Shown one piece after another: positions 7,011-64,000 of a stretch of DNA of 64,000 nt. A model generated the notes under the pieces. It saw only the letters and a program-made list of their open reading frames with translations. It searched no databases and had not been told where the DNA came from. This DNA is from Podarcis vaucheri (Eukaryota): assembly GCA_965113315.1 (NCBI GenBank), contig OZ220375.1; one strand, 5' to 3'. Made by a program: the position numbers and the translations under genes. Every line of letters begins with the position of its first letter. Position 1 is the first letter of the stretch.

Positions 7011-7928
7011 TCACACGGTCAAGTCAGCTCTGGCAGAAGAAGAGCGAGAGGAACGGCTGCTCTTCGTGGAACTCTTATGGTGGAAGTGAGCCTTGGGCTC
7101 ATAGTGACTGGGAATCCCGCCATGAGAAGGCATCCCATTGGCGCCTCCCTCTGCCGGGGCCAGGAAGTGCTGCGATTTCTTCTCTTGCTTCTGATTGGAC
7201 CAGTTGTCCTGCTGTTCGTAAGAGGCAGTGGTGGGCGGGGCAATCATGCGGCGCCTCCTGCAGCGGTTCTTGAACAGGAGGTGGGCCAGCTCCACCAGGC
7301 TGAGCAAGGCTGAAACCAGCCCCACCATGAAGTAGAACTGGATGAAGATGGTCTTCTCGGTTGGCCGAGAGACAAAGCAGTCAATGAGGTGAGGGCACAG
7401 GTGATGCTTGCAGATGTACTGATACCCCACCTGGAAGCCGTACAACATCCACTGTCCGACCAGGAAGCCCATCTCGGCCAAGATCCTCACCACCACGTTG
7501 ACAATGTAGAAGGTCTTGATGTTTTGGCTGCGCTGGCTGGGCTGAGGCCCAAATTTTGCAGGGGCCTTTCCCCCCACCCGGCTGGCTTCCTCCTCTCCCG
7601 TTTCCATCTCCTTCTGGTTGATCTTCGTGGTCTGGTGCATGGAGTAGATGACAAAGAGGACCGCCGGGGCAGAGAGCACCACAATGTGGAAGACCCAGAA
7701 GCGGTAGTGGGAGATGGGGAAGGCCAAGTCGTAGCAGATCTGCTTGCAGCCAACCTGCCGCGTGTTGCACTCAAACTCCTCCTGCTCGTCGTCGAAGACG
7801 TCGCTGCCCACCGTGGCCAGGATCAGGATGCGGAAGATGAGCATCACCACCAGCCAGAAGCGGCCCACCATGGGAGAGTGCTCCTGCACTGCGTCCAGAA
7901 GGGAGCTCAAGAACCCCCACTCACCCAT
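7011..7928 (-). CDS. GJD3: Gap junction delta-3 connexin (Cx31.9/Cx30.2 ortholog), single coding exon, 305 aa
   Basis: Starts MGEWGFLSSLLDAVQEHSPMVGRFWLVVMLIFRIL. Extracellular Cys patterns are C-x6-C-x3-C (CNTRQVGCKQIC) and C-x4-C-x5-C (CKHHLCPHLIDC), followed by SRPTEK. Kozak GCAGCCATGG at 7928 directly follows a polypyrimidine/CAG acceptor. Same position and orientation next to TOP2A as human GJD3. Confidence 0.93.
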   Translation of the reverse strand: MGEWGFLSSLLDAVQEHSPMVGRFWLVVMLIFRILILATVGSDVFDDEQEEFECNTRQVGCKQICYDLAFPISHYRFWVFHIVVLSAPAVLFVIYSMHQTTKINQKEMETGEEEASRVGGKAPAKFGPQPSQRSQNIKTFYIVNVVVRILAEMGFLVGQWMLYGFQVGYQYICKHHLCPHLIDCFVSRPTEKTIFIQFYFMVGLVSALLSLVELAHLLFKNRCRRRRMIAPPTTASYEQQDNWSNQKQEKKSQHFLAPAEGGANGMPSHGGIPSHYEPKAHFHHKSSTKSSRSSRSSSARADLTV

Positions 7929-10179
7929 GGCTGCTGCAGCAGGGAGGAGAGGAAGGGAAATAAATTGAGAGGTCAGCTTCACGGGAGATCCTTCCCGGGA
8001 CTGGCGATCTTGCTAAGGGTTGACACATGCAGCTACTCCATGAGTCTGGGGAGGTGATGAAAGCATTCACTTTTAAAGGCCAGCCACTAAGTGGGGGAAG
8101 ATTGGGAAGCCTGGCTGACAAAGGGCAGCTGCTGGAACAAGGTAGGGAAAGAACAAGGTTGGGGAAGAACCTGGAAGGTTGGTGGTAGAACATCTGCTTT
8201 GCATGCAAAAGGTTGCAGGTTCATCCCCCAACATCTCTGTATAATATAAGGCTGTCCCCTCTGTCTGAAACCTGTTTGCAGTCAACGTCAACAGTACTAA
8301 GCTAGACAGGCCAATGATTGGAAGCTTTGATCATCTAGTAAAACCCTCTGCAATGCAGAAATAACAACTAAAGAATCCCTGAGAGATAACCACCCAACCT
8401 CTCTTTAAAAAAACTCCAAATCATCGGTCCATCTGGCTCAGGACTGTTGACGCTGACTGCAAACAGGTCCATAGGGTTTCAGATAGGGGATCAAACCTGC
8501 AACCTTGGTGTTATCAGTACCACACTGCAACTGACTGAGCTATCCAGAGCATCTACTTGGCATGCAGAAAGCCCCGAGCACAATCCCGAACATATCCAGA
8601 CCGGACCACTGTCTGAAATCCTGGAGAGCTGCTGCCAGTCTGTGCAGACCAAAGCTGTGGTCCTCTGGGTGTTGGTGGACTACAACTTCCATCATCCCTG
8701 ACTGCTGGCAATGATCTCTGGGACCGATGGGAGTTCGAGTCCAACAATTACCATGGTGGATGGAGCAGTGGTTTGACTCAGCACAAGGCTGTCCCCATGG
8801 TGACTTCTATTCCTATGGCGCACTGAGCCTCAATCAGCAAGCGCAGAGCATCTATACTGGAGAGGTCTCCCTGCCCCCATGTATCAAAGCAAGGCTATTT
8901 TAATTCTGTGAAAGGGGTATGACCTTGGCAACACCGAGAGAGCTTGGGGGTTTGCTGGTGGATGTTTTATATCTGTTGCCAAGTTATCTGGAGAGGGGAG
9001 AAGATAAAACCAGACAGCTCAAACTGGTCCAGGCCAGCTGGAGTGTGCAGACTTCTAGGGCGACAGATTGGTATACCAGCCAGGGAAGGTCCTTTCCGCT
9101 GGGGATTGGGAAGAAAGACACAGCCCTTAAAGAAAATGAATATACTGTCTTGCAATATTTGTCAAATGCCTAATAACTTAAGGACCCTTAACTTCAGAAC
9201 TAAACTCTTGCACCTGGGATGACTTGCTTTTAGAACCATGTAAAAATTGCACAATCTTGGAAGATTGTGTTCTGCGTGAGTATGCCACCTGTTTGGAATG
9301 AGCCATACAGGGAACAGTAACTCATTCAGAGATAAAACAGGCAGCCTCCTCTGAAAGTGGGTGACTCTGCTATGTCTCTGCATAGCACATGATCTGTTGT
9401 AGGGAAGCAGGGAAATTATCCACTGCCACCTAACAAACAAAACACCAGAGATGCAACAGTGATCTTGGCACACCGTTTGAGAACTGCTGATACAGGACTA
9501 AGTACAGTACAGCATCTGTTTTATTAATTAATCTGTTTTGGAAATAGGGGAAATGCCATAGTTGCATGGATGGGGGAAGTGTGTATGTGAGCGAGTGTGT
9601 GTGTGTGTGTAGGGGAAGAGAAAGTTGCCACTTTCTGGTTGCACTGCTGGTTTTTTAATAGCTATTTGACACGCAGAAACTCAACAGATCTATGCTCTTC
9701 CCCAGCACTGAGATGCAACGATCAAGAAAGCTCCATGTGTTGAATTGTCAGCTGTTGTCTTGTTTTTAAAGGGAGAGGGAAGGTGAACATTCTCTTGCAA
9801 ATTTCTTTCCCCTTCCTTGATAGAAATAAGAAATGCATTCTAGATTCCTACCACCTTCGTTCTCTTGATCCCCCCCAAACACCCCATAATACTTTACAGA
9901 ACCAAGGCTGCAACTTTACTAATTTAAAATCAGTACTAGTCAATTAAAAATCCTTGTTGCAGATTAAAACCCACCACTGACACTAATACTTAGTGGCACA
10001 GGCTGCACAAACTGTTCCCCTTCCCGGTGCCAATTTTACATCATTCTCCCCCACTACTACAACAACAAACAACCCAATACTTTATAAAGATGGCTCCAAT
10101 ACCTATATTCAAATCCCTATTTAGCCACGAAACTCACTGAGGGACCTTGGACCAAGTAACTATGTCTGAGTCTAGCCTA

Positions 10180-45876: not shown

Positions 45877-46688
45877 CAAGGTGTGACCAGAAAGTAAGGT
45901 GAATCACTCCTGTTTGCAATAATGGGAACTGCTGGATTCGCGGAGACATGTGGGAGGCATTCATCCATATTTCAGCTAACATATGTGCACGTGTCTCAGC
46001 ATTTGTTAACAGGCCTATGTTCATGTGGTAGCGTTTAGTAGCTGTTAATAGTGCAGTGCATTGTGATTGAAAATGGAGCAGAGAGTCAATATGAAATTCT
46101 GTTTCAAATTGGGTAAATCGGCATCGGAAACCCACAAAATGCTCACAATTGTTTACGGATATGAAGCGGTAACTCGAAAGACAGTGTATGAGTGGTTTAA
46201 GTGTTTCCGTGAAGGGCAGCAAACCATCGAAGATGACCCTCAGTGTGGCAGATTGTCAACGAGCAGAACGGCGGCAAATGTCGACAAAGGTTGGGCGTTA
46301 TTGATGTGGGATTGGCGTTTGTCCATCTGAATGATGGTGGAAGAATTGCATATTCCGTGTGAAATCATTACTGAGGTTACTGAGTTGTCCCATCCTCCAT
46401 ATTCTCCTAATCTTGTCCCACCAGATTTCTTTCTTTTTCCAAAACTGAAATTTGCACTGAAAGGGCACAGATTTTTCAACATTTCACACTTCCAAGGTGC
46501 AAGGGAACCGAAAGCAGTACGAAAAGATGACTTCTCCAGACGTTTCCAATAGTTCTACTGTACTAATGTTGTCAATGGTGCATTCTATCAGAGGGGCCTA
46601 CTTTGAAGGCCTGTAAGGTATGTATGTTTGAATATTTCTCGCTGTCCGATTTCTGTGACCATTCACCGAATATTCCGGTCACACCTTG
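45877..46688 (+). mobile_element. Internally deleted mariner DNA transposon (about 810 bp)
   Basis: TIRs CAAGGTGTGACCAGAAAGTAAGGTGAAT and ATTCACCGAATATTCCGGTCACACCTTG with TA flanks. Remnant transposase: HTH region (QRVNMKFCFKLGKSASETHKML...VYEWFK) and HPPYSPNLVPPDFFLFPKLK motif. Confidence 0.9.
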
Positions 46689-47141
46689 TATAATAAACCA
46701 AGCTTTCTTTGTTTCTTCATGTGAGAGCTTCTTGTGGGCATAAGGGTTAACACACATCCATAACAAGCACACGTCATAACTCCAGCAAAAGTTCCTAAAC
46801 CTCTCAGCAGTGTGTATATGAGCATACTGTACATGAGTGCTGGTGGTGCACATGTAAGTCCAGGTACACACATGGTAACAAAGCAGAAGCCCCTTTTTCA
46901 CCTGCCTGTGTGAGGTGCTGGTTCTACACATCAGCACACATGACAGCTTGCTGAGGTGCAGGCGATGCATGGTTTTCTTTCCTCTCAAACATTCTTTCCC
47001 AGCTGGGGTGGAAGGATGGGTACCTGCATTTTCCACCTCATGTGTCTTAAGGCTCAAAGGCTTACTTCATTCATCCTGATCCAGCCTTTGTAGCAACTGG
47101 CTCCTTCTACTGTTCCTTGCTGATCTGAAGCTGCACTCGTC

Positions 47142-47337
47142 TCAGAAGGCATTTTCCACGCACAGAACAATCAGGAAGTCTGAGCAGCTATGTGTGTCCG
47201 CTGTGAGGAACTTGCCTCCGGCTGGAGGTGAGGCAAGACCTTTGGACTGGTTGGAGGCTGTTCGCCACTCCTGACAGTCTTGATTTTCGGCCTGGCCTCC
47301 CAGTTGTTTGACACCATGCCAGACTGCCTTTTGTCTC
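47142..47337 (-). CDS. Endostatin-domain exon 3 with stop
   Basis: [64 protein letters not shown]. Confidence 0.92.
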
Positions 47338-50300
47338 CTGAACATACAAACAGCAGGGACATACAAAAGTGGATAGCTGAAGTCAACTGCATGGCACAAA
47401 AAAGTACCCATCCTATCTTGTCTCAATCCATTATTCCCAAGGGCCAAACTAGACACAATGGCTGTGGCTGCATGTGTTTAAATGTGGAACTATCATCCCA
47501 ATAGCATAGAAAGAGGTTGGATCTGAATTTAACAGCAAAAGGGAAGCACAGCCCAGTGTTTCCTGCAGATTCCATTTACACCTCCCAGCAGCTCCTCTGC
47601 CCAGGTATTTTTCATAGATAGGTGGAATCTACACACATATTTAAAAAAACGCTGTGAAAATGCTTTTTTTAAAAAAAAGTTCTGAAAAATATATTGAATG
47701 TGCCATAGCTCATGGTCGCCATCTAGTGTCACATTTGTGTATTGTACTTTACAGCACACTTAAAACGTTTTATTTGCAGCTGTATAGCTGAGTCCATGGT
47801 CATGGTTCCTTCCATTACTCGTGGTAAGTGGAGAAGAAAAGCACATGGAGAGACAAGCTGTGGAGCAGGGGAGGTATGCAATAGGCAAGATGTAGGTTCT
47901 GAACTCCTCACCTGTGTGCTTCAAAAACCTTCCCCAGAAATCTAATATGCTGGACCTCATTACCCATTAATTTTCCCCTTCTGGGCCTCCTGAATATTTT
48001 CCTCACCTAGATATTCCCCAATTAGGTACAGTCCCACTTATGGGGGAACTGGTGAATATAGTTTGGGATGCCCTGCTTGTACCTCCCATATGGTCACGTA
48101 TCCCTACAGATGCTTTCTTTCCCCACATGTTACTCACCACATAGGATCTGTCATGACATTGCGCCCATTGAATGTGTAGATGGGGGACTTTGGGGAATTG
48201 AAACGAGCAGCACTACTGAAGAGGGAATTCCAACTCTTTGCCAGCAGCTGGCCCTGCAACAGAAACAATGCTTTTCAAGCTAGAAAACAGTCAACAGAGG
48301 CTGTAGGCCCCACAAAATTATTCTACAACCCAAGTGCCTCAGCCATAGCAGCGGAAGGCACAAGAATCCTGCCCTTCCCAAAAGCATAGGAGTGCCTGCT
48401 AGGGTCATCACTTATCATGAGAATTAGTTGGGCAGTTGCTAGGCAAGCACCACATGCCTTTTTCATCAGGTACCAGTGCTTTCCTCAGAAAAGATGTCTG
48501 CATCAAATCAAGAATTCAACAGGATGTTGCTACTAGCCTTAAGGTTGACAATAGGCAGGTTCCTGTCAGTTCTCTTTACGATGGAGACTAGGCTTTGAGT
48601 GGATGATGACAGGAAGGCCCGGAAAGTTCCACGCAGCTTCGCCTCCTGTGACTGCCGATAGCACCGCAGGTCAACGCCACCAATCCCATTCATGCTACCA
48701 GTCAGGGGGATGTTGAGGGCCACTAGGCGGAGCTAGAAAAATTGAGGGATTTTAGTTAAACACCTGACACCTAAGGAGGACAACAGGGTGGAGTAGATCA
48801 ACCAGAGGAGTGGTGTCAATTAACCAGTCAGGTTCTTGTTATGGCCTTGCCAGGTTTTGCACCATTATCTTCAAGGGGGCCTCCAGAAAGAAGAGGTTGG
48901 TACAGCAAGGTCTATTAAAAAAGGTAAAGGTAAAGGACCCCTGGATGGTTAAGTCCAGTTAAAGGCAACTATGGGGTTGTGGCGCTCATCTTGCTTTTCA
49001 GGCCGAGGGAGCTGGCGTTTGTCCACAGACAGCTTTCCGGGTCATGTGGCCAGCATGACTAAACTGCTTCTGGCGCAACGGAACACCATGACGGAAACTA
49101 GGAAACCAGAGTGCACAGAAATGCCGTTTACCTTCCCACTGCAGAAGTACCTATATATCTACAGTGGTCCCTTGCTGTTAAATGGCTTGGCCCCCAAACA
49201 AATCAGCTCCCAAATGCTGCAAACCTGGAAGTGAGTGTTCTGGTTTGTGAACTTTTTTTCGGAAGCCAAACGTCTGACACGGCTTCCGATTGAGTGCAGG
49301 AAGCTCCTGCAGCCAATGAGAAGCCGCGCCTTGGTTTTCGAATGGTTTCGGGAGTCAAACAGACTTCCGGAACAGATTAAGTTTGAGAACCAAGGTCCCA
49401 CTGTACTTGCACTTGTATGCCTTCAAACTGCTAGGTTGGCAGGAGCTGGGACAGAGCAATGGGAGCTCACCCTGTAGTGGGTATTTGAACTGTTGACCTG
49501 ATCAGCAAGCCCAAGAGGCTCAGTGGTTTTGACCACAGCGCCACCCGTGTCCCTCCCTCCCCACCCACTGCTGCTAAATTCTTTGCCTGAGACAACACTC
49601 AAAAAGAAGAAGAAAAGGCAAGTTGTTGTGCCAGCAGCTTGACTGCCTTACACTCCTCTCCTGTTGAACTTACTGAAGGGATCCTCTGGGGGATGCTAGG
49701 TGGTACAGTCTCGACAGTTGCTTGGCTCTTGTCGTTTTGGACCTAGGAAGACAGGATACACGGTGAAACAAAACCATTTTTTAATGTGACTCAGCTTAAA
49801 CTCAAATACTGCATGCACACATAAACTGCAGCAAATATTGCCACCCCCAGACACCATCTGCCCCTCCTACTAGCTATGCACGGAGTGCAAGAGAACTAGG
49901 AAGGTGATGAAGGCGCTAGCAGCAGCAGTGCATGCAGCCTGTTCCCAGTAAGAGTTTTCTGCCTGTCCGTAGCTGTGGTGGGGCAGTTGTTGAGAAGAAT
50001 TAAATAGGCCTGCTGAGGCTGGAGTAAGGAGTTGTTGGAGTGTAGACGAGGTGCTTTACAAATAGATGAAATTTATGACTCAAAGGGGTTTATATCACTT
50101 AATTTCATCATTACTTTATCCAGCAGTTAACTATGTTCTTCTGCAAGTGTGCCACCCAAATGGGTGTAATATTTTATGGGCTTTCGGTTTCTTTGCTCTC
50201 CCCACTTTCAGCCCTTTAACTTAAGCCACAGCAAAACCCAGGAGACCTGCTGAACAGGCAATGGCAAAGCATTACAAGCTGGAAGAAGTCCACACCTGAT

Positions 50301-52328
50301 TTCTGTCTGTAGACACTGAAGGGTCATCTCCAACCAGTAAAGACTCTGAATCCTCCAGCTGATCAAGAGACAATAGAAACACAACAGGGATAAGGCTGGA
50401 CCGAAATGTGTAAAAAAACGAGCATTTGTTCTCATGCGCGAAAAGTTTTTTTAAAAATGCCATCAGGGCAAGCATTGCCCAGGTAGCTCAAGCAAGTCAG
50501 CCACAAAAGCATAAGTTAATCTCATCCTGATTTTTAAAAATAAGGAGAGCAACTGAGCAGCCCTCTTGGATCAGGGCAAAGGGTCTAAACAGTCCAGGGA
50601 ATCGTAGAGCAGTCCTACCTCCTGTTGATGCAGTAAACCCACTACAACATCATACAAGTGGCTGTCCATTCTCCTGTTTCATATAGTGGCCAACCAGATG
50701 CTTTTGTATCAGATATTGAGCGAGTCTGAGTGCTGCACATCTACAGAGTCATGCACATCAGTGTCCCAATGTTTTCCTACCAGAAGCCTGCTCCATCCCT
50801 TGGGGGTTCGGAAGAAAGCTTCATTCCCTTCACTGACGTAGACCAAGCTGCCTTCAGGAATGGAGGAGGCCGATTTGAACATCAGCTCTTTTGACTTGAA
50901 GATCCACGTGGAGTGCTGGAAAGTAAAGGAAGAGCAGGTGCCTTTATTAAAAGCACACTTATCCTCAACTGGTGGAAGGCTTTGCAATTCAGCGATCAAG
51001 AGACCTTTCGGTTAAGGCTGACCAGAGTTAAGGCTATCATAGGCTGCCTCTCAAGGTCCACAAAGCCAGGAAATAGGATGCTAAGGCTGATGCTTTGAGA
51101 AACATGCTGCGACAACAGTTGTGCCACATCACAAGCTGGGCTTGCTTAAAAGTTGCCATCCGTGCAAATTTTTCTTTGGTCTCTCAGGCCTCAGTGAAGT
51201 GCCTGGACCTGCAAAGATGCTCCACATTGTTTTGGCCCTGTAATGACTTATGAAACACCTGAGCCTTGCCGTATTGCTACAGGAATTCTTCAGTGAGTAA
51301 ACTGTTTATGCCTGGGTGGAGTGTCTGTGGTGTGCGTGTTTCTGTGTATGTGCTGGGATGTGTCGGGTAGCAATGTGTGTGTGTTTTAGGGTGTGTGTGG
51401 CTGTGGAATGTGCACATCATGTTCTTGGGGGATCTGTGTGGTGCCCACAGTAACTTATCAGGCTTCCAAATGTGACCACAGCCCCACGGCTGGTGTCTCC
51501 TGGTCGGTCCCACAACTAAAACAACAGGCATTACACATCCTATTCGCTAGGTGGCTCCCTCTGCAAACACTGAAGAACGGTCCATGAATATTGCTTCAGT
51601 ATTTATATGGCACACACATCATATTATTTTGCCAACAGTGGCTATTATAGGCCTTAATGGGGCAATAAAACCATAATAACGTTTGAAGTGCTCCTCAGAA
51701 CGTCATGAAACCAATGAAAACATGTCTTCAAGGAGCTTGAATTACTCCATAGCTTCCCACCCAAATTGGAAACAAATATATGACAAGATTGTATAAAAAT
51801 TGGAGTAAAAAGGGTCAATGTGTCAATTTTCAGCACTTTTTAACTTACTGTATTGTTGGCAATTTTCAGTGGATCATTTTGAAATTTGGCACAAGACTAG
51901 ACTTCATCAGGGGGATGATTTATGCCATGCTTTACATTTTTAGTTCAACTATTGTCATTTTGATAAGTTACAGAAGTTTTAGGTTTATACTAGCAAAATG
52001 TATTTGTTTGGTTTTTGCTACTCACCTTAACGAAAGGGGTACTCCCGAGCCGCTTCAGTGATCCTTAGATTATTATTGTAGAATTTAGTGGCTACTAGCC
52101 TAACACTTAGTAGCTGTGTATTGTTTGAACAGAATTTATAACTTTTGTTCCACCTGCAACCCCTGGCTTTCAGATAAGAAGCATGTTGTCTCAGGACAGA
52201 GAAAAACATTTCTCTGATAACCAAGAAATGAGATAGCTGAAGGAGATTTCATTGAGGGTGTGAAGAAATCCAGATTATTTGAAGTGAATTTCTAAATCTC
52301 ATGTGTAGAGGAGCTGGTGGTGGAGGAA

Positions 52329-52383
<55 letters not shown>

Positions 52384-53701
52384 TACCCCACCCATCTGGC
52401 TGGTTTTCCCCAGCCACTCCAGGTGGCTCCCAACAGAAAAAACAGAATAAAACATCAAACATTAAAAACTGAGAAGGCCCTTTGCCTGGTTCCCTCTACT
52501 TGAACTTGTTCAGCTCTTTACCTTGGACTAACTATTGGAGGGAGTATCAGAAAGGAGAAGAATGAAGGTGACATACCTTAAACCCATACTGGTTTTCATT
52601 GGAAGAATCCTTCAAAGACAGCCCATCATCTGCACAGCAGAAAAACGACAGAATGAACAAACCAGCCACCATCCATCCCTTTGTGGCAGGAAGCAAATAT
52701 TCCATCAACTGTACAAGAAAAAGCTCCCCACCCCAAAAGAGGAGAGTCTGTAAATAACATCCTGAAGCGCTGCTTATTAATGGTTCTAAATTAGAATGGC
52801 TGGCAGACAACAATTCTTCCTTACTTACTGACTTGGCAACACACTCACAGTTCAAATTCCAAGACCAGTATACTGCCAGTGGTGGCAAGGAAGACTGTGG
52901 GAAAACACCCAAACAGGGCACATTGCATGCATTTCCACAAGTTTCTCTTCCCTTGTAAAGGTGGTGAAGAAGGGACTGGCTAGGGCTAAACGTCTACTAG
53001 AAGCGTATATGCAAGTCCTGGGCTAATATTGTGTCATTCACAGGCTGCATTCATCAAAGAACCGGTGGAACAACAGATTGCAGAGTCAGAGAAAAACCCT
53101 CTGCAGACTATATCCTTGCGCCCTCCCAAAGTGGCTGCCGATTGGCCGTATGCTGGATAGATATGCAAGCCACATCAAACCGCAGTAGAGCAGATACACA
53201 AGAGAAGTCGCACATTATTAGCCAGAGAGAAAACGACTCGCACCTGAATCCAAAGATGGGTCCTGGCTCAACTGGAAGAAAACAAAAAGAGCACAGAGAT
53301 GAGCACCACATTAGCCAAGTTATAGAGACGAATGGGCTGTGCAGAAAACACCATGCCAGGTTGGGGGTGGGACTCAGTGAAAAATGGAATCAAAAGATTT
53401 TTAAATCGGTCTCCTTGCTGAGCAAGGGACCCTTAACCCACAGGGCTGTGTCTTATGTGTGGGGAGCTTCTACCAAGTTCAGGGGCCAGCAGCATTAATT
53501 TTGTCTGCAGACTAGCACTGCCTGCTTACACATCGTCTGTTGTACCCAACCATTTCTGTAAATTTTGGTTGTGGTTCATCTTATGGTACTTTGTATTTTA
53601 AATTATTGCAAGTTGCTTTGAGACCTTTTTTTATTTTGTAAAGAGCAATTAATTAATGAAATGCATTTGCCAATTATGTAATAAATACCACCACCACCAC
53701 C

Positions 53702-53738
<37 letters not shown>

Positions 53739-56560
53739 ATATTTCAGCCAAGGCTGCTGCTACACCAGAACCAAACATTTCTGTTTGTTCCGCACAGGAA
53801 ATATTCCTTTGGCCTGTCCTCTCATGCAACAGAGGCTTGGATTGCTGAACAATGCTTTTGGTGGTGCCTGGCGCTACTTGTCTTTGCAAGGCGTATTAGA
53901 GAGCAGCGGAAAAGCCGCCATTTGGCCCTGCCAACTCACCGGTTGCTTGCAATGCCTCCTGGGTGGGATAGGGATCACCCTCTGGAAATAGACAGATGGG
54001 AGGTGGGGGAAGGAAAAAATACAGGTTAAAGAGGAAAGGCTTTCAGTATTAGATACAAAATCCCACAAAGCAAGAAAAAGCCCATCCCATGTATGTGATG
54101 TTTAAAAAACAGCTGAAGAGACAGATCCCTAGCTTTCCACAAGTCACTCTTCTAAATACCATGTGGCTGCTCCATCTCCCCTAATATTGAGGTGGGGTTT
54201 TTTTGGGTGGGGGATGAGGATCACTTACATTAAGGTAAATAACTCCCGGTGGTCCAGGAGGGCCTGGGGGCCCAGGCATGCCAGGATTTCCTGCGGGGCC
54301 TGGAGGACCCTAGAAGAAGCAGAGAAGGGAACAGAGACACTGGGTGTTATCTGCATTCTGAAACTGGACTTTGCAAACACCATTACATTTCACACCTTGA
54401 CATCTGAATGGGCTGGCGAATAGCTTGCCTGCTTGCACAGCTGTTTCTCGTGCAAGACTCAGGTGGACTCCAGTGCTCTAAGGAAGTCAGCCTGGGATCT
54501 TTGGTTCCATACAATGCTCATTTAGTCTGGGGTGGTGGGTGGAAACTGGGGTCAAGAGGTCAAATGCAGAGCCCTCTGGGGCTCTCTACCTGCATCCCAT
54601 CACCAAGCCCTTCTCCAGTGCTTTCGCCTGGCTGGACTGTGCCTTGAACTGTGATTACGCCTCCTGCTAGCAGGACCAGCCTACCCATGAGGCAAGATGA
54701 AGCAGTCTCAGGGCAGCAAGCTCTGGACAGCTGGGAGGGGCAGCAGATCTGGCCTCTGATGAGCACACCGTACACTCGCAGCTGCATGCCCATGCGTGCA
54801 TGCGACAGCGGGTGCATGCCAGGCAGGTGTGTGGTGGGTGAACAGTAGCATGCAAGCATGCAGCAGAGGGGACAAGGGCAGCAATTTGTGTTTTGCCTCT
54901 AGTGTCCTGGGCTGGCCCTGCCTGCTAGCCTGGATGGAGGGATGGTTTGTATGCGTGTCTGAAACTTGTGACTTTTGCATGGCTGGAATGTATCCTCCTA
55001 TTCAAAGGTAGGAGTCGCATCCATTGCTCCACCTACTTTTGCCTCTGGCCACCCCCACCATATGGACCCCATAAGGCTGCTACGAGGGAAGCCAGCCCTC
55101 AGACTGAAAAAGGTTCCCTACTCCCAATTTAGGCAAAAGTGCTTCTTTTTATCTGTTCTGTTCTGTTTTTGTTTTTTTTAAGGAAAAGGCCAAGATTGGG
55201 AAGACAGCACATTCTGAAGGCAAGATACAATTTTTTCAAAAAAAACAACCAAAACCAAACCAAGGTTTGTTGGAGAAGATGAAATGGCTGGCTTACACGG
55301 CTGGCAATCGAGCCATATATCTCAAGGTCTCCTTTGCCATTCTGGAGGAGGAGGAGAAGAAAAAGACGCCAACTTAATGTCCTGGTATTGCTCATGGGCA
55401 CATCTTGCCCACCCATGTCATTTTTACTTAATACATAATCCACACACACCCCTGCCTCCTTTCCTATTGACTGCAGAAATTCAGGATGTTTACACCCATG
55501 GCAGGGCACACTTTGGAACACAACCACCGTTAGCAAAGGCTGGGAGAGTCTCCTGACACTGCACTTTTGGCTCTTTTTATAAACTGCTTTGAGGCTTTGT
55601 TACAGTCAACCGGCGTATAAATCTTGTGACATGAAATAGTAAATAAATAAATAGGCCAGGAACGGTGGCAACATTATTTCTTTTTACTAAGCCATGCCTA
55701 AATATTAATATTGGCATCGCTTTGGAACATGCGTGTATCAATAAGATGGAACTCTTGGGGATGAGGAGAAGCAGTGGGACACGTTCAAGAATTGTTGGTT
55801 GATTTTTGGGGGTGTTTTTTCTACAACCTGCGTGCACCCTAAGAGGAGATACTGGGGAAACGCCTCCTCCAATATGGCCCATGACATGGGTAGGCAAACT
55901 AAGGCCCAGGGGCCGGATGTGGCCCAATCGCCTTCTAAATCCGGCCTGCGGATGGTCCGGGAATCAGCATGTTTTTACATGAGTGGAATGTGTGCTTTTA
56001 TTTAAAAGGCATCTCTGGGTTATTTGTGGGGCCTGCCTGGTGTTTTTACATGAGTAGAATGTGTGCTTTTATTTAAAATGCATCTCTGGGTTATTTGTGG
56101 GGTATAGGAATTCGTTCATCTCCCCCCCCCCAATATAGTCTGGCCCCCCACAAGGTCTGAGGGACAGTGGACTGGCCCCCTGCTGATAAAGTTTGCTGAC
56201 CCCTGGCTCATGACAATTCAGGCTTGCACTGAAAGCCCACTAAAATACCTTTCGCCCTACATTGGCTTCCGCTTTTGTTTTTTGTTGCTCCACAGACAAA
56301 GGCTTGTAGCAGACACCAAACACAAGTTTCCCCTTAGCTGATCCTTGGAGGGAACACTGCCCCGTGCACTCAGCGTTAAGACCACCAATCCTAAATGGCA
56401 GGGTGGGGGAAAACATATTTCAGTGTACCTCTTGGTAGGTAAAAGGTGTCCAGGAGTCCGAGTCAGCTTTTGTTGCTTCAGGGCAGTTGCAGCAATCCTG
56501 GGTAAGAAAACACAATGAAGGGCCTTAGAACAAGTTGAAGAAGAAGAAGAAGAAGAAGAA

Positions 56561-56591
<31 letters not shown>

Positions 56592-59500
56592 GGGAATGAA
56601 TCACAGTGCTTTGAAGATGTGGGTCCTCTTTGCACAACTACATACCCGTTCTCCAGGTTCTCCTTTTTCACCCTGCAAGGGGGAAGAAAAGAAACCAAAA
56701 ACGGGAGGTCAAATCACCATGACACACTTATAGGTACAGCCAGGGACACAGCGACAAGCCTATTCATAAGCTTATGATACAACCAGGATCAGGAGCTCTC
56801 AAGTTAGAGAATGACATTCCTGGGGATGGTCCTTCCCCCGCCACACACCCAATTTCGGGAAGAAGACAGGGTGGCTCGCCGACTCAAAGGACACTTCAAT
56901 GAACATGTGAGCAGCACTGCCTGAAGCTGATGGTTCGTGAGGACTCTAAATCACCCCGTATTTAGAGTCTCTAGATTCAAAACAGGCCTTTTTTCACAGC
57001 AGCTTCTCCTGCCCAGCGTACAAACATGCGCTGCTAATTCTGTTCGGGGTGTGATGAGGCTAACCGGGTTATTAACTGCTGCTTTGTCCCCTAGGTTTCA
57101 TTGCAGCTCTTTGCTTCTGAAAAGATTGCAGGGGAATACATGGCTGGAGTAGTAAACGGGCTTTTGCCACAACTCAGCAAAGCAGATCTAAAGTTGCAGG
57201 CAGCTTCCCTGCACCTTAAAGTATGAATTCAGGAAGTCTGTGGCCTTGTAGTCAAACATACACACAAATTCATGCTGATACCCAAAAGTTCTTACAATTG
57301 GCTATTTTGCACTGCTCTTTGCAAGGAGAGAACTCTCCTTCCTTGGAGGTTTTTAAGCAGATGTTGGATGGCCACCTTGCATGTTTGCAAGATTCCTGCA
57401 TTGCAGGGGGTTGGACTAGATGACCCTCAGGGTCCCTTCCAGCTCTACAATTCCAGGATTAATCCACGATTAACTGATTAGACAGGCCCCTGCGAGCATG
57501 AAACTAAGGGCTTAGCTATACATCCTTTTGCACTGCACTCTGCAGGCACAGGTCCGTGCTTCAGAACTACACGTAGGAGCAGGGATTTTTTTTTTGTCCC
57601 GGCACTTTTCCATTTTACAGCTGAATTGGAGCAAACCTTGTTGTGTTTTAAAGCACTGATGCGAACATACGCAAGCGGCAAGGCAGAAGCAGAGGAAGGT
57701 GGAGGGAAAGGGAGAGAGAGCTGGACAGAAATCCAAAGTTTGTAAGTACTAATTTTTTATTTTTAAAGAAAAATGTATGCTTGGAGTCCCTCAACTCTGA
57801 CTCACAGCCACTCTGCTTTTGATACAAGGCAAAACAGAGACCAGAGAAGCAGGGAGAAGATAAGATGGCAAGAATGCTGAAGAGACACACAAAAGGATTT
57901 TTTTTCCCGGGAGGAAGAGACACATATCATGAGAGGATATGAGCAAAAATAAACACAGATACGAACAAGGATGAATAGAATTCGCGATCATGGGTTTTCT
58001 GGGTTTCCCACTTTTCCCATCCTTTCAGCTCATGATGAAAACTTTGAGGTGGGCTCAGTGAGCGAGGGCTCCTACCGCATCCTTCTGAAGAAGGGGCATC
58101 ACCCAAAGAGAAAGGAAGGAGAGGCAGCCCACCACCCATCTCTCCACTCTTCCCCTTGTAACGGGGGGCAGGGGGAGGTGAAAGTGAGGAAGAAAAAGAA
58201 TTTCCAGGGTATCCAAAGTCAGCTCTAGTCCACAACCTAACTACACGCCATTGTCTTTGCGGTGGTTGCCCCCACACAGAGATTTTGGATGCCCTTCCTG
58301 CACCACCTTGTTTCTCCTGCTGGTATAACAGGGATGGGGGGAAAGGGTGGCGCTGTGGTCTAAACCACTGAGCTTCTTGGGCTTGCTGATCGGAAGGTCA
58401 GCGGTTCGAATCCCCGTGACGGGGTCAGCTCCTATTGCTCTGTCCCAGCTCCTGCCAACCCAGCAGTTCGAAAGCATGCCAGTACAAGTAGGGCTGGGGA
58501 ACCTTCAGCCCTGCAGATGTCAGGTTACAACCCCCATCATCCCTCACCATTGACTTTGCTGGCTGGGACTGAAGGGAGCTGGAGCCCAAGAACATCTGGA
58601 AGGGCACTGCTTCCCCCCATCTCTGCCATGTTGCTTGATAGGCTTCATACTCACCTTAGGACCTGGAGGCCCAGGAACTCTTGCACGAGTGTTGCACTAC
58701 AAAGAGAGAAGAGAAGGGCATTGATGCAACCCATAAGGAACACTCCCCAACAACTGCCCATGCACAAGTGACAGATCCTTTGGACCTGTGTTCTTGGCAG
58801 ACTTTGGTGTTTATGTGCCAATTAAGAACAATTTTTGCACATGCCTATTTACCGTATTTTTTGCTCTATAAGACTCACTTTTTCCCTCCTAAAAAGTAAG
58901 GGAAAATGTGTGTGCGTCTTATGGAGTGAATGCAGGCTGCACAGCTATCCCAGAAGTCAGAACAGCAAGAGGGATTGATGCTTTCACTGCGCAGCGATCC
59001 CTCTTGTTGTTCTGGCTTCTGAGATTCAGAATATTTTTTTTCTTGTTTTCCTCCTCCAAAAACTAGGTGCGTCTTGTGGTCTGGTGCGTCTTATAGAGCG
59101 AAAAATACGGTATATTTATAAAACATATGTATAGTTTTCAACGTCTATTCATTTTCCCTTAAGAAGAAAAAAAAGGAATTTCTCCTCTCTTTTTTGTAAC
59201 AACTGGGGGAGTGGAAGGCGGAAATGGAAAGGGCAAGGAAGAATAAAAAGCAGTCCCGCATGGAGGGGCAAGGGCCCAAGGATAAATAGGAAGCAACGGA
59301 AGCCTCGTAACTATCACAATTCCAGGTTCCATTTAGCTTCTAAAATGTAACCAGGATCACCCTATGCTTTGGCAGGCTCGTGTCTGTGGTCATAATGTCT
59401 TGAAAGTTTCGATGAAAGTAAGTTATACACTAGCTTGCCTTTGGGGCCATCTTACCCCACTTCTGTGGAATAAGCAGCCTCATATAACCAGCATGCTTAA

Positions 59501-62500
59501 GTCTAATTAATGCATGAAGGCTTTAAGACCACAGAGCAAGCTGTCTTGCCAGGCTTGGCCAGGTCACTCCTCCTTACCTTGGGTGGAAGGATTATCATGT
59601 GAAGCCTACCTGTAAGGAGGTCTAAGTTGGATGCTTCAAGCTAAGGCTGTGTGGCTTAAGCAAGCTATCTTTGTGTTTCTATATAAATAATTCAGAAGCA
59701 TTCACCACTTTGGAACCTAAGTTTTACTGCCTGTGTTTTCTTGCTGGTGTATGGAAAAACACATGAATATGACTGTTGAAGGGATTGTAAGTAAACCACT
59801 TACATGTGGTCTCTTTCTATGCTAAGGGAAGAGGGAACAGAAGTGGTTTAAGGGTAGCATGACCGGTATGGTCACACTGGGCCCCGCATTGCAGGGAGTG
59901 CTAAAACAATGCTTTAGAATGGAGTGCAAGAGGCAGGGTGCGTGCAGAATTTTAGTGTTGCACATGGTGCTACTGAAATTTGAGAGCCCAAAGTCTGCCA
60001 CTGAGGGGAATTTTGGAAGCAATTTAGAAGGGATTATTTTTAAGATCTAATAGCCTATATTTCCACTCTTTACTTTGCTGCATATTTTGAGATTTTAAAT
60101 CTCTGCTGGGGTTCCTCTAACCAAAGAGTACTTGCCCTAAACCTGGATCTAGGCATCCATGGAATACTCCTTTTTATTTATTTATTTGATGTTCTGAGGG
60201 AGGCCCCTGGTGGATCATGGAGACGGAAGTTAATTGGGAGAGGGGAGAGGAGAGAGGAGAAGGAAGGCAGATCGCTCAGAGTGTCTATGCTATAATTTGC
60301 AGTCAGCTCCTGCTGGGCTAGAGCCTTCAAGCTGAATGCACAGTTCTGTTAATAATAATAATTTTTATTATTAAAGGCACTCCCATCCACCTGGACATTC
60401 AAACCCTCCTCCTGCCACCTGGATGGAGGGCAGGCAAACCTGAGGACTTTGGGTCAGACCTGGAGGTCAGGCAACCCTCATGCTTTCATATGGCTCTCAT
60501 GATCAGATGGAAGCTGGTTTGTGGGAGGAAAACACGTCAGAATGCAACGTTCCTCAAGACACTACAGGACAGGTGTGGATTGTGGTTAGTGTCGTGTGTA
60601 TATGTCTTCCCAAACCAGCGGTGGGAGAGCACTGGATGCAGAGTAAGCGGGAATGTGTACACGGCCTTAGTGTGCCATAAGTAAGCAATCCCAGATGGGT
60701 ATCAGAGAGCATGCTAACTCAGAGCAAAGCGCATTTCCACTCACCTGACTCTCACCAGGAGGACCCATGGGCCCAGGTGCACCCTGAGGCCCCATTTCAC
60801 CTTTCACACCCGGATTGCCAGGAGGGCCCTGTAGACCAAACTCACCCTTCTCACCCTGCAAGAATAAACCACAAACATTATCACAAGTCCTAAAACAGAA
60901 ACCCAAGGTTTGTAAGTACAGTGGTACCTCGGTTTCCGAGCATCTCAGAAGCCGAATGTTTAGTTTTTCGAACGCCGAAAACCCAGGAGTAATTGCTTCT
61001 GTTTTCGAACACACCTTGGAAGCTGAACGGCTTCTGCGGTGTGTTTTTCACTTTTCTCAATGGAAATTGCAGGCGGCCCTTTGCGCCTGGGTTGTGGAAT
61101 GTTTTGGAAGTCGAACGGTCTTCCGGAACAGATGACGTTTGACAACCGAGGTACCACTGCACCAACATTACTATTACTATTATTATTATTATTATTAGAG
61201 AAATGTAGGCTTGGTGTTCCTCAGTGGCGTAGCGTGGGTTGTCAGCACCCGGGGCAAGGCAAGTAATTTGCGCCCCCTAACCCGTGGGTTTGCACCCCCT
61301 AACCTGTGGATTTGCGCCCCCTAACCCTAACCCCCAGATGTTGTGCCCGGTGCGGCCGGCCCCCCCTGCACCCCCCACGCTACGCCACTGGTGTTCCTTG
61401 CCTCTGATTCACACCCACCCACCCACTCTGCTTCAAGGCAAGCAGAGACCCACCCAAATTGCTTTGGAAATTCAGGCATTTATCTACCAGCTAGCAAAAC
61501 ACCTGTCATTGTTACAGGGCGTAGGTAGGAGGAGGCCTGCAAGTTTGTGACCCTGTTCCTGCCCGTCTTATTTAGCTCTCCTCTCCCTTCCATCCTGCCT
61601 TCCTGCTATTAGGCCGCCCACCTCTGACAGTTCACCCATGGCCCCACTTTCAGCACTGCTTACCTTTGGCCCGTCCTTCCCTGGAAGCCCTTCTCGTCCT
61701 GGAGGCCCTTTCTGCCCAGGGGTGCCTGGTGGTCCTGGTGGCCCCATGTGGCCTGGAAGTCCTGGATGCCCTTCAGGGCCCATGGCTCCGGGAATTCCCT
61801 CTGCCCCCACTGGCCCTGGAATGCCTGAAGGCCCTGTGGATCCTGGTGGGCCAGGCTGGCCTGGTGTGCCAGGGAGGCCTGGAGTACCTTGCTGACCTTC
61901 GTGCCCTGGAAGGCCAGGGGGCCCTTGGGGTCCTTCCTGACCAGGGTATCCTGGAGGTCCAGGAAGACCTGGGTAGCCCATTGGACCAGGGGGCCCTTCC
62001 ATGATGCTGACCCCCTAGGAAAAATGACAAAAGAAGCACGAGGTGTATTGTTGATCTTTTAAGAGGCAGAAAAAATATCGTTCAGCGTCTTTGGGAAGTT
62101 GCTAATGCATTTGTCAAGATGTCTGACTTAATAGGAAACCAAAGCTAAGATCTAGTTTTTCCTGAGAGTATATACCTGGGTCTGAGTTGGATCACTTCAG
62201 ATGGGAGGTGGGAGCAACGCGATAATATTTCCCTCCACAAAAAACCCCAAATGCAGAAAGCTAGCATGTAAGGGAAAAGAGTGGCGCAGTGTGCAGGGAA
62301 TTTCTTTGTATTCAACCATGCGAGCTCCTACCCACAATCCGTAGTCCTGATAAAAGCTTATCGCTTCAGTAAGAACTAGGTTTAAAAGATAAACAAGACA
62401 TGACAGGGCTGCAATTCCATGTCTACCTTGTGCTGATATAATGCATGTTTGAGTGTCTTAGGGCCAAAGCAGAAGAGAAGCTGTTCCCAAAAAATAGCAG

Positions 62501-63345
62501 CTGCATGAATGGCTTTTAAAAAATAAATAAATGGCAGGCATTGGGAACCTGGCAGGGAGGACTTTAATACTTCCCCCTGCTGCAGTCCCAATCTGGATTG
62601 GACATCTCTCCTATGCCTGGAAGAAAAGCTTCAGTTAACACAAATGGAAACTTTTCTTTCCATGCAAATAACCGGTGCTGCCTCCGCCAATCCAGATTGG
62701 GACTGTAGCATGGGCCAAAGGGTTAGAAATTTCCCTGAAAGCCTGAAAACATTTGCTCATAAAGTTGATGATACTTCAAAGCACTGGAATTTTTTTTTAA
62801 CGCACATAGCCCGGAACCCGCCCCCCCGCCTCTGTGCTTCCAAAGTGTTGCTATCTTCCGCTGTGGATCAATCACATATTGGCACATTCCGGTTGCCCAA
62901 TTAAAGTTGATTTGGTGCTGTTGCACAACACACACACACTCCCTCCACAAAGCAGTCTTTTCTTTTTGTGATAACCAAAGTGATGGGAAAACACACAGGA
63001 AGGTGTGTGTTGATAGCTTCTTGATGTGACGTCATAACCCCCACCCCCCAAATAAATCAAAATGAGTGCTCAGAGCTGTCTAACCTCTCCACAAACTTTG
63101 TGGAAGCCAATCGGGATGAATGCTCAACAAACAACTCATCAGGAAGTGACCTCAGTTCTCTCCCCCAGGCCCAGTCTCACCTTTTCATTTCCACCATTGG
63201 CACCACCACATTCTGGAGCTCCTGGAAGGGACTGGCCTGGGGGTCCCGGGGGTCCTGCAGGTCCAGGTTGGCCTGGGTTGCCTGCTAGCCCTCTTTCCCC
63301 AGGAAGTCCTCTTTCTCCTGGAGGACCCTGGTCACCTTTGTCTCC
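47142..63345 (-). CDS. Multiplexin (collagen XV/XVIII-like) gene, 3' part: interrupted Gly-X-Y, trimerization domain, hinge and endostatin domain; 5' end outside window
   Basis: 17 exons join in frame (1788 nt, about 595 aa). Endostatin motifs [57 protein letters not shown]. Trimerization motif IPEGSLVYV...[14 protein letters not shown]15-like [11 protein letters not shown] motif. Confidence 0.92.
48138..48253 (-). CDS. Endostatin-domain exon 2
   Basis: [38 protein letters not shown](W), 116 nt. Confidence 0.92.
48538..48732 (-). CDS. Endostatin-domain exon 1 (GC donor)
   Basis: [65 protein letters not shown]. Confidence 0.92.
48920..49554 (-). mobile_element. Sauria-type SINE interrupted by a MITE (49162-49403)
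   Basis: Head and tail both present; the MITE sits in a TA within the GTACCTAT.TATCTA/CTTGCAC core. Confidence 0.8.
49162..49403. mobile_element. Tigger-like MITE nested in a SINE
   Basis: TA-CAGTGGTCCCTTG...CAAGGTCCCACTG-TA. Confidence 0.75.
49674..49742 (-). CDS. Multiplexin hinge exon
   Basis: [23 protein letters not shown]; GTAAGT donor. Confidence 0.8.
50296..50358 (-). CDS. Multiplexin hinge exon
   Basis: [21 protein letters not shown]; phase 0-0. Confidence 0.75.
50781..50915 (-). CDS. Multiplexin trimerization-domain exon
   Basis: [45 protein letters not shown]. Confidence 0.9.
52330..52383. repeat. (TAA)n microsatellite (LINE tail)
   Basis: Pure TAA run. Confidence 0.95.
52577..52629 (-). 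CDS. Multiplexin exon, 53 nt
   Basis: [18 protein letters not shown]; phase 1 to 0; GTATGT donor. Confidence 0.68.
53244..53271 (-). CDS. Multiplexin microexon, 28 nt
   Basis: LSQDPSLDS; phase 0 to 1, needed to frame the next exon. Confidence 0.65.
53687..53737. repeat. Compound (CAC)n(TAC)n microsatellite
   Basis: Direct reading. Confidence 0.9.
53940..53981 (-). CDS. Multiplexin exon with COL15-like motif
   Basis: [14 protein letters not shown] (compare COL15A1 IFPIPVRPHCKMP). Confidence 0.85.
54229..54309 (-). CDS. Multiplexin exon (last Gly-X-Y segment found)
   Basis: [27 protein letters not shown]. Confidence 0.9.
55297..55341 (-). CDS. Multiplexin exon, 45 nt
   Basis: [15 protein letters not shown]; strong pyrimidine tract and GTAAGC donor. 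Confidence 0.72.
55885..56205. mobile_element. hAT-type MITE with an internal duplication of about 70 bp
   Basis: Same family; TGTTTTTACATGAGT...TTTGTGGGG occurs twice; TSD GCCCATGA/GCTCATGA. Confidence 0.8.
56429..56497 (-). CDS. Multiplexin exon, Cys-rich interruption
   Basis: [23 protein letters not shown]; phase 0-0; CAG and GTACAC sites. Confidence 0.65.
56537..56590. repeat. (GAA)n microsatellite in a short multiplexin intron
   Basis: Pure GAA run between exons 56646-56672 and 56429-56497. Confidence 0.95.
56646..56672 (-). CDS. Multiplexin microexon, 27 nt
   Basis: GEKGEPGER; CAG and GTATGT sites. Confidence 0.82.
57331..57458 (+). mobile_element. CR1 LINE 3' end fragment
   Basis: Same CR1 tail as 2378-2531. 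Confidence 0.7.
58346..58491 (+). mobile_element. Sauria-type SINE 5' portion
   Basis: GGTGGCGCTGTGGTCTAAACCACTGAGC head. Confidence 0.7.
58655..58696 (-). CDS. Multiplexin exon, 42 nt
   Basis: [14 protein letters not shown]; TAG and GTGAGT sites. Confidence 0.82.
58852..59110. mobile_element. Tc1/mariner-superfamily MITE
   Basis: TA-CCGTATTTTTTGCTCTATAAGAC...GTCTTATAGAGCGAAAAATACGG-TA. Confidence 0.8.
60745..60855 (-). CDS. Multiplexin exon (Gly-X-Y)
   Basis: [37 protein letters not shown]; GTGAGT donor. Confidence 0.88.
60919..61159. mobile_element. Tigger-like MITE
   Basis: CAGTGGTACCTCGGTT...AACCGAGGTACCACTG TIRs. Confidence 0.8.
61222..61390. mobile_element. hAT-type MITE with internal CCCTAA-containing repeats
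   Basis: 17-bp TIR CAGTGGCGTAGCGTGGG; perfect 8-bp TSD GTGTTCCT. Confidence 0.85.
61664..62014 (-). CDS. Multiplexin exon, 351 nt, 37 Gly-X-Y triplets
   Basis: [16 protein letters not shown]...[12 protein letters not shown]; TAG and GTAAGC sites. Confidence 0.92.
63181..63345 (-). CDS. Multiplexin exon (Gly-X-Y plus interruption)
   Basis: [55 protein letters not shown]. Confidence 0.9.
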
Positions 63346-63649
63346 CTGCCATAGGAAAGAACATGGGATGAGAGGCGTGCGCTGTGGATTCAGGCAACAG
63401 TCAATATCTACAGCAAAGGTCTGTGCTCAATCTCCTGCTGTGCAAAGCGCTTCCCTTCTCTCTTAGAAACCTCTGGAGTCTTGGACTTCCTTAGACAGGC
63501 AGAGTGGAGCCAATGCCAGCAGGCAACTCATGGTCTACTTTTGGCACACTTATTTTGAATGGCTTCTGGGAGAAGCTTATGCACACATATTTTGGGGAAA
63601 CTTAAATGTATGGCTGGAGATGGGGCCATGATTGCTCCTTTAGGGACAA

Positions 63650-64000
63650 GTAATAATAATAATAATGGTTTCCTCATCTACTCTGGGAGGCTTCCAACAG
63701 AATATTAAAATACAAAAACTTATTAAACATTAAAAGCTTCCCTGAACAGGGCTGCCTTCAGATGTCTTCTAAAATTCTGGCAGTTTCCCCCCCTCTTTGA
63801 CATCTGGTGGGAGGGCGTTCCACAGGGCGGGTGCCACTACCGAGAAGGCCCTCTGCCTGGTTCCCTGTAACTTGGCTTCTCGCAGTGAGGGAACCGCCAG
63901 AAGGCCCTTGGCACTGGACCTCAGTGTCCAGGCAGAATGATGGGGGTGGAGACACTCCTTCAGGTATACTGGACCGAGGCCGTTTAGGGCTTTAAAGTCA
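63650..64000 (-). mobile_element. LINE (L2-like) 3' fragment with (TAA)n tail, runs off the window
   Basis: GGAGGGCGTTCCACAGGGCGGGTGCCAC core; TAA repeat tail. Confidence 0.6.

Follow-up and report, generated by a model that had tools for sequence, protein, structure and literature searches.

An expressed gene beside TOP2A in Podarcis vaucheri is very probably a third ancient gnathostome multiplexin

A stretch of 64,000 nucleotides (nt) of the Podarcis vaucheri genome (assembly GCA_965113315.1, contig OZ220375.1), termed the window below, carries at positions 47142-63345 a collagen gene of the multiplexin family, to which COL15A1 and COL18A1 belong. A preliminary description, made from the sequence alone, had read it as 17 exons joined in a single frame of about 595 amino acids (aa) between these two ends, without stops or frameshifts. 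This structure was reproduced by an independent rebuild, which started from stop-free segments with Gly-X-Y runs and from endostatin-like segments, and relied on collinear alignment of squamate orthologues, local alignment for three short exons, and a search for splice sites of consistent phase; the boundaries of exon 11 were set by eye. The resulting gene consists of 17 minus-strand exons, running from 63345 to 47142, whose 1788 nt make up 595 codons and a TGA stop codon (47144-47142), with zero internal stops and zero frameshifts. All acceptors are AG, while the donors are GT in 16 cases and GC in one (exon 15, AAG/GCTAGT). The exons (E1 to E17) and the 3' untranslated region (UTR) are as follows.

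63345-63181, minus strand: E1, phase 0; GDKGDQ..., collagen triplets and an interruption, aligning to residues 178-241 of the Rhineura protein P0185; acceptor ctatggcag/GGA, donor AAG/gtgaga
62014-61664, minus strand: E2, 351 nt; longest collagenous exon, 37 unbroken Gly-X-Y triplets; Pfam Collagen 7.4e-21
60855-60745, minus strand: E3, 111 nt; collagenous; acceptor cttgcag/GGT, donor CAG/gtgagt
58696-58655, minus strand: E4, 42 nt; Cys-bearing interruption, with a Smith-Waterman match to P0185 CNTHTRLPGPSGPK
56672-56646, minus strand: E5, 27 nt; GEKGEPGER
56497-56429, minus strand: E6, 69 nt; non-collagenous Cys-rich interruption
55341-55297, minus strand: E7, 45 nt; placed by collinear alignment and splice sites
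54309-54229, minus strand: E8, 81 nt; last collagen run
53981-53940, minus strand: E9, 42 nt; motif exon directly after the last triple helix
53271-53244, minus strand: E10, 28 nt; LSQDPSLDS and 1 nt; leaves in phase 1
52629-52577, minus strand: E11, 53 nt; enters in phase 2; 3' junction to E12 seen in spliced contigs, 5' acceptor deduced from the sequence together with the alignment to Anolis
50915-50781, minus strand: E12, 135 nt; trimerization domain, Pfam Collagen_trimer
50358-50296, minus strand: E13, 63 nt; start of the hinge
49742-49674, minus strand: E14, 69 nt; hinge
48732-48538, minus strand: E15, 195 nt; endostatin part 1; GC donor at 48537-48536
48253-48138, minus strand: E16, 116 nt; endostatin part 2
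47337-47142, minus strand: E17, 196 nt; endostatin part 3, ending ...LCVENAF; stop TGA at 47144-47142
46645-47141, minus strand: 3' UTR, an approximate lower bound taken from contig record coordinates (X1 record 1, X5 record 12)

Profile and database searches of the gene were run one exon at a time. Across E1-E8 the Gly-X-Y runs comprise 13, 37, 12 and 8 triplets, separated by interruptions containing Cys, an interrupted collagenous region of several runs being what is expected of a multiplexin; E2 matches Pfam Collagen at 7e-21. E12 alone matches the NC1 trimerization domain PF20010 with 35.2 bits (cut-off 23.8, E=1.3e-8). The Endostatin profile PF06482, which has 170 positions, is matched at 1-66 by E15, 68-103 by E16 and 107-169 by E17, and the four conserved endostatin cysteines are present in the exon translations. 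Single-exon Pfam matches and translations thus agree with the architecture first proposed, namely interrupted Gly-X-Y, a trimerization domain, a hinge and a four-Cys endostatin domain, and the translations also contain the protein motifs that had been quoted from E9 and from the E15 loop.

The gene continues beyond the window on its 5' side. A search for a 5' exon in 63346-64000 returned matches at chance level only, and orthologues carry 170-250 extra N-terminal residues relative to the window model, from which it follows that the 5' part of the gene lies outside the window, as had been supposed. On the 3' side, transcript contigs extend approximately 450-460 nt past 47100; no AATAAA or ATTAAA poly(A) signal is found on the minus strand between the stop codon and 46000.

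The collagen gene yields transcripts spliced as the model predicts, in Podarcis vaucheri or a very close relative. A search of sequencing runs identified eight that contain 10-17% of the sampled words, which corresponds to the exonic share of the stretch. None of them is recorded as RNA; they are taken as such because their contigs are spliced. Four runs from three studies were compared with the interval 47100-52700 of the window. Spliced contigs skip the predicted introns (47337/48138, 48253/48538, 48732/49674, 49742/50296, 50358/50781 and 50915/52577), and the six 3'-most junctions, from E17/E16 to E12/E11, are exactly as modelled. The joints 50915/52577 and 50358/50781 were each seen in 3-4 runs, and the 284-nt GC-AG intron that follows E15 (48254-48537) was skipped in all 4. 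The record pieces of a 2414-nt contig (135, 132 for E13 and E14 together, 196, 116 and 237 nt) match exon lengths, while in a 2914-nt contig approximately 630 nt remain upstream of exon 1, which is enough for the missing N-terminal coding part. Spliced transcripts were recovered at contig depths of 20-100. The preliminary description had named an untranscribed locus with dN/dS near 1 as grounds for giving up its interpretation and had proposed a check against RNA; the predicted junctions show that the gene is transcribed.

A search with E15 against 1.8 billion representative proteins gave a top group at 69-80% identity, followed by a step to 66% or less, where collagen XVIII and the invertebrate multiplexins begin. 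The members of the top group were named by means of cluster look-ups and a word-indexed search with a gecko protein. They are RefSeq or UniProt entries, variously titled 'collagen alpha-1(XV) chain-like', 'collagen alpha-1(XVIII) chain-like' and 'uncharacterized LOC', and represent geckos, lizards, snakes, an amphisbaenian, turtles, birds and frogs. This group is referred to below as M3. For the NC1 exons of the window, all of the best matches are squamate members of M3, at 63-91% identity. More than 40 RefSeq/UniProt models of M3 exist under '-like' or LOC names, examples being Paroedura picta LOC143825852 (P0018), Rhineura floridana 'XVIII chain-like' (P0185) and Leucoraja erinacea LOC129710187 (P0020). 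Further members from the cluster look-up are platypus XP_028931569.1, Polypterus and Erpetoichthys proteins, a coelacanth fragment, and Xenopus and Hymenochirus models.

For phylogenetic analysis, COL15A1, COL18A1, teleost col15a1a, col15a1b and col18a1a, chondrichthyan genes and invertebrate outgroups were added, the window product being represented by its annotated orthologues. In a first maximum-likelihood (ML) tree of the NC1 region (90 rows x 277 columns, LG+C20+F+G4), COL18A1 forms one clade (support 100/99), COL15A1, with both teleost col15a1 genes as sisters, a second (92/78), and nine chondrichthyan and 29 tetrapod M3 proteins a third (100/100). A second ML tree of NC1, with 66 rows, adds coelacanth, bichir, caecilian and platypus, all of which fall within M3 (100/99); the platypus protein (P0415, XP_028931569.1) is placed inside the tetrapod part of M3 (98/94), on a long branch. 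The NC1 region of M3 nests in neither the COL15A1 nor the COL18A1 clade. Approximately unbiased (AU) tests reject a union of tetrapod M3 with tetrapod COL15A1 (difference in log-likelihood 30.2, p=0.0063) as well as a union with tetrapod COL18A1 (67.6, p=4.9e-29). Two ML trees and two AU tests are therefore in favour of the original proposal of a separate multiplexin paralogue that is neither COL15A1 nor COL18A1. Teleost col15a1a, which was considered as a candidate orthologue of M3, was rejected, since its sister group, within the COL15 clade, is col15a1b (97/85).

In sharks and skates, members of different clades are found on different chromosome-size contigs of the same species (Heterodontus P0296 and P0216; Leucoraja P0314 and P0020) and hence represent separate loci. 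Chondrichthyans and bony vertebrates are represented together in every one of the three clades, which places the multiplexin duplications before the gnathostome radiation; the single lamprey sequence has no firm placement in the tree. An origin of the three genes as ohnologues, through whole-genome duplication, which had been proposed together with membership of the HOXB/RARA paralogon, would be compatible with this timing. Bird M3 models lie on contigs of 5-9 Mb, a size that fits a microchromosome but is too weak a sign to bear on adjacency to TOP2A outside this species. As a lead only, 9q22 and 21q22 presumably share gene families with HOX-bearing regions. No therian or teleost sequence was found in the M3 clade, as far as it was sampled by searches that were not exhaustive. 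The gene had been thought to be retained in reptiles and lost in mammals: squamate and turtle members bear out the former, but the latter is too broad, as there is a platypus orthologue.

All M3 members tested contain Collagen, Collagen_trimer and Endostatin domains. An N-terminal TSPN/LamG domain is typical of the long forms of multiplexins, and is absent from some invertebrate multiplexin isoforms. Chondrichthyan M3 proteins, which are approximately 1250-1400 aa long, possess a TSPN domain (E ~1e-40 to COL15 TSPN), whereas none is detectable in frog, turtle, bird or squamate members. Instead, the N-terminus of tetrapod M3 consists of a signal peptide, a conserved QW motif and an acidic Thr/Pro-rich stretch, followed by the first collagen run. 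The expectation, expressed in the preliminary description, that the missing exons of the window encode a TSPN/LamG domain is probably wrong, judging by these orthologues.

Directly after the last triple helix, shark and most tetrapod M3 proteins carry the motif (V/L)Y(L/V)NR(V/F)(Y/F)PVPPRPHCK, which cannot be discerned in the models of platypus and kiwi. A spacer of 30-50 residues separates the PVPPRPHCK motif from the trimerization domain in M3, whereas no more than approximately 10 residues lie between the helix and this domain in COL15, COL18 and amphioxus. Bony-vertebrate M3 proteins often end in FPYxHMW, while those of non-gecko squamates, including the window product, stop at CVEN(A/T)F. 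The long endostatin loop GxMxGIRGAD occurs in amphioxus, in shark COL15-like proteins, in COL18 and in M3, and the short loop GDIRAD is confined to tetrapod COL15A1. On this distribution, the long loop is taken to be ancestral and GDIRAD to be a derived deletion in tetrapod COL15A1. The deletion accounts for the closer match of E15 to collagen XVIII endostatin (67 bits, approximately 60% identity) than to collagen XV (43 bits) in PDB. The product had been described as a mosaic of a COL15-type motif and a COL18-type loop; both are present, but as retained ancestral states rather than as a mosaic.

Some M3 models are much reduced. The platypus protein has 464 aa and an almost vestigial collagen region, with the trimerization and endostatin domains intact. 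The bichir models (Erpetoichthys P0412 and Polypterus P0411) have 241-327 aa and comprise NC1 only, with zero collagen runs, either because the proteins are truly truncated or because the gene models are incomplete; the coelacanth member is P0022.

Among known multiplexins, collagen XVIII resembles M3 in its interrupted helix, PF20010 domain, hinge, four-Cys PF06482 domain and long GxMxGIxGxD loop, but it forms a clade of its own and its union with M3 is rejected. Compared with collagen XVIII, tetrapod M3 has no TSPN, frizzled or DUF959 modules at the N-terminus, M3 has the additional PVPPRPHCK motif and spacer between the helix and the trimerization domain, and the aligned zinc-ligand positions are not His/Asp. 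In the window product, R takes the place of the His of LHLVALN (LRL, aligned with His11), G follows NLK at the position of a collagen XVIII Asp that is presumed here to be the fourth zinc ligand, and N and G replace the two arginines of GMRGIRGAD. From the substitution of the zinc-ligand positions and of both loop arginines in the alignment, an endostatin-like fragment of the window product would be expected to have no zinc site, to lack part of the heparin site and bind heparin weakly, and to be more like that of collagen XV than that of collagen XVIII. Collagen XV (COL15A1, restin) has the same NC1 architecture, the zinc site is probably lacking in both, and a PxPPRPHCK-type motif is also found in some proteins of the COL15 clade (frog, teleost col15a1a); M3 differs in its separate clade, in having kept the long loop, in its length (approximately 800 aa against approximately 1350) and in its tetrapod members without TSPN. 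The invertebrate multiplexins (C. elegans CLE-1, Drosophila Mp, and those of Ciona and amphioxus), which served as outgroups, are single pre-duplication genes with the same NC1, and lie outside all three vertebrate clades. The closest counterparts are the unnamed RefSeq/UniProt models of M3, which are orthologues with exon-level collinearity, 60-91% identity per NC1 exon in the case of squamates, and the same motifs; these, however, are automatic predictions with inconsistent names, none of which is described as a distinct collagen type.

Taken together, it is very probable that the locus holds the 3' two-thirds of an expressed squamate M3 gene, beginning at the first collagenous exon and ending with the stop codon, and that M3 is a third ancient gnathostome multiplexin, sister of COL15A1 and COL18A1. 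A number of points weigh against this reading. The signal peptide and N-terminal region lie outside the window, leaving a model that is 5'-incomplete, and the intact frame described here is that of the part within it. The sequencing runs bear the label 'RNA?' by guess, and their source organism differs from the window at approximately 1-3% of exon positions. The branching order of the COL15A1, COL18A1 and M3 clades is poorly supported (36/56, with a weak grouping of M3 and COL15), and what is said of zinc and heparin depends on ligand and heparin residues that are assumed. In addition, the NC1 path lengths of M3 in the 66-row tree are about twice those of COL15 and COL18 for comparable taxa, and the 90-row tree gives it a long tetrapod stem (0.62 changes per column), indicating that M3 has evolved fast; this fast change coincides with the loss of TSPN. 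The exon differences between run contigs and window, over approximately 830 coding nt, comprise 7 non-synonymous and 5 synonymous changes, a sample of 12 that is too small for a rate estimate, and suggest that the gene may be under only moderate constraint. The fast evolution of NC1 and this 7:5 ratio, together with the loss of the C-terminal FPYxHMW tail in non-gecko squamates and the near-vestigial collagen domain in platypus, might be taken as signs of a decaying or non-functional gene, which is transcribed but has passed beyond selection at the protein level in this lineage. Such decay is very improbable, given a 595-codon frame that is intact across 17 exons with correct splice sites, the conservation of the four Cys and the trimerization core, the depth of the spliced transcripts, and the presence of intact orthologues, spanning more than 250 million years, in all sampled families of squamates, turtles and birds.

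It is hardly credible that the gene is simply the COL15A1 or COL18A1 orthologue of this species, relocated beside TOP2A, or a recent lineage-specific duplicate of one of them. Database names of the 'XV-like' or 'XVIII-like' type would fit such an origin, as would the higher score of the endostatin exon to collagen XVIII than to collagen XV, but the latter is explained by the derived deletion in tetrapod COL15A1; moreover, M3 forms a separate clade at full support that includes chondrichthyan, coelacanth and bichir members, and both unions are rejected by the AU tests. A further alternative accepts M3 as a distinct ohnologue, but supposes that sauropsids, or squamates, have lost the true COL15A1, such that their genomes hold two multiplexins and the labels 'COL15A1' and 'XV-like' in reptiles and birds denote M3. 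This is unlikely, though it has more in its favour than the other two. The M3 protein of Anolis carolinensis (P0189) is named 'collagen alpha-1(XV) chain' by NCBI, without '-like'. With the NC1 of teleost col15a1b and of frog COL15A1 as queries, the COL15A1 proteins recovered were those of amphibians, mammals, sharks and teleosts, none being from a sauropsid, although sauropsid M3 did appear, at much lower scores; in the ESM Atlas, a search for sauropsid COL15A1 gave generic chordate clusters only, and the supplements of gene-loss papers contained nothing on COL15A1. Chick collagen XVIII, however, is well known, and the same word-indexed, patchy searches likewise failed to bring up COL18A1 from birds and squamates other than that of the tuatara; the lack of a sauropsid COL15A1 in these lists is therefore not evidence of absence. 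Most squamate M3 models are named '-like', as would be expected if another gene is COL15A1, and chicken proteomics, in which the locus is not specified, reports both COL15A1 and COL18A1 (PMC13052084), which counts against the loss. The reading of the locus as M3, a third ancient multiplexin, is accordingly preferred to each of these alternatives.

Besides the collagen gene, the following features were found in the window, in which every gene noticed is on the minus strand.

7014-7934, minus strand: connexin, a single-exon open reading frame (Pfam Connexin 4e-81), downstream of TOP2A in the position of GJD3
~18900-41900, minus strand: many exons of TOP2A, with the C-terminal exon at ~18.9-19.3 kb and the 5' end at ~41.9 kb
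46067-46549, plus strand: remnant of a mariner/Mos1-type transposase (Pfam HTH_48 8e-14), between the collagen 3' UTR and TOP2A

One topoisomerase II exon scored 156.7 bits against human TOP2A and 145.6 bits against TOP2B. The stop codon of the collagen gene lies approximately 5 kb upstream of the 5' end of TOP2A, the two genes being on the same strand in a tail-to-head arrangement. The order connexin-TOP2A-collagen agrees with the GJD3-TOP2A context recognized at the outset; in human, the position beside TOP2A that corresponds to the collagen gene is presumably occupied by IGFBP4. An Rfam scan of 46000-64000 gave zero matches. Within the introns of the collagen gene, contig depths in the runs climb to 1,000-100,000 over 48783-49717 and 52336-52522, where loose ends and joints are numerous; these stretches are probably high-copy repeats resembling short interspersed elements and transcribed from other places, and the consensus of one loose end has the look of a tRNA derivative. 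Long simple repeats are also present in the introns, a trinucleotide run (poly-Y/poly-I/poly-L) at 52300-52400 and a purine-rich run (poly-K/poly-E/poly-S) at 56535-56600.

As to the product, an outline may be drawn from what is known of the family. The M3 chain would be secreted, consistent with the signal peptide of its orthologues, and would trimerise through the NC1 trimerization domain. Its interrupted triple helix may be cross-linked or stabilised by the Cys residues of the interruptions (E1, E4, E6 and E9), and the protein would be expected to reside in or near basement membranes. Protease cleavage of the hinge (E13-E14) could free an endostatin-like fragment.

A review of collagen XV recognizes two human multiplexin genes, zebrafish paralogues and one invertebrate gene (PMC7852327). 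No description of a third multiplexin was found in the literature searched, which leaves out most subscription journals. In that sense the collagen is uncharacterised, as had been claimed, but it is already predicted in the database models of M3. What would be new is not the gene itself, which has been predicted in dozens of genomes, but its recognition as an ancient paralogue, the third of the family, marked out by its architecture and its pattern of loss. More tentatively, ancestral vertebrates may have possessed three multiplexins that were subsequently sorted, M3 being dropped by therians and teleosts, while sauropsids may use a TSPN-less M3 in place of COL15A1, a scenario that is doubtful as it stands. 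If it were true, work on 'collagen XV' in birds and reptiles would be about a gene other than mammalian COL15A1, and M3 would count as a collagen type still without a number, from which an endostatin-like matrikine of its own would derive.

A third paralogue as old as COL15A1 and COL18A1 would revise the history of the multiplexin family. M3 is expressed in reptiles, and intact gene models exist in birds, amphibians, sharks and platypus; its loss in therians and teleosts would make it a natural test case of gene loss. There is also a warning for annotation, in that the labels '-like' or 'COL15A1' in non-mammalian data may denote a different gene. If the interpretation is correct, M3 would supply a new endostatin-type domain whose predicted zinc and heparin properties are different and could be tested in chick, Xenopus and lizard.

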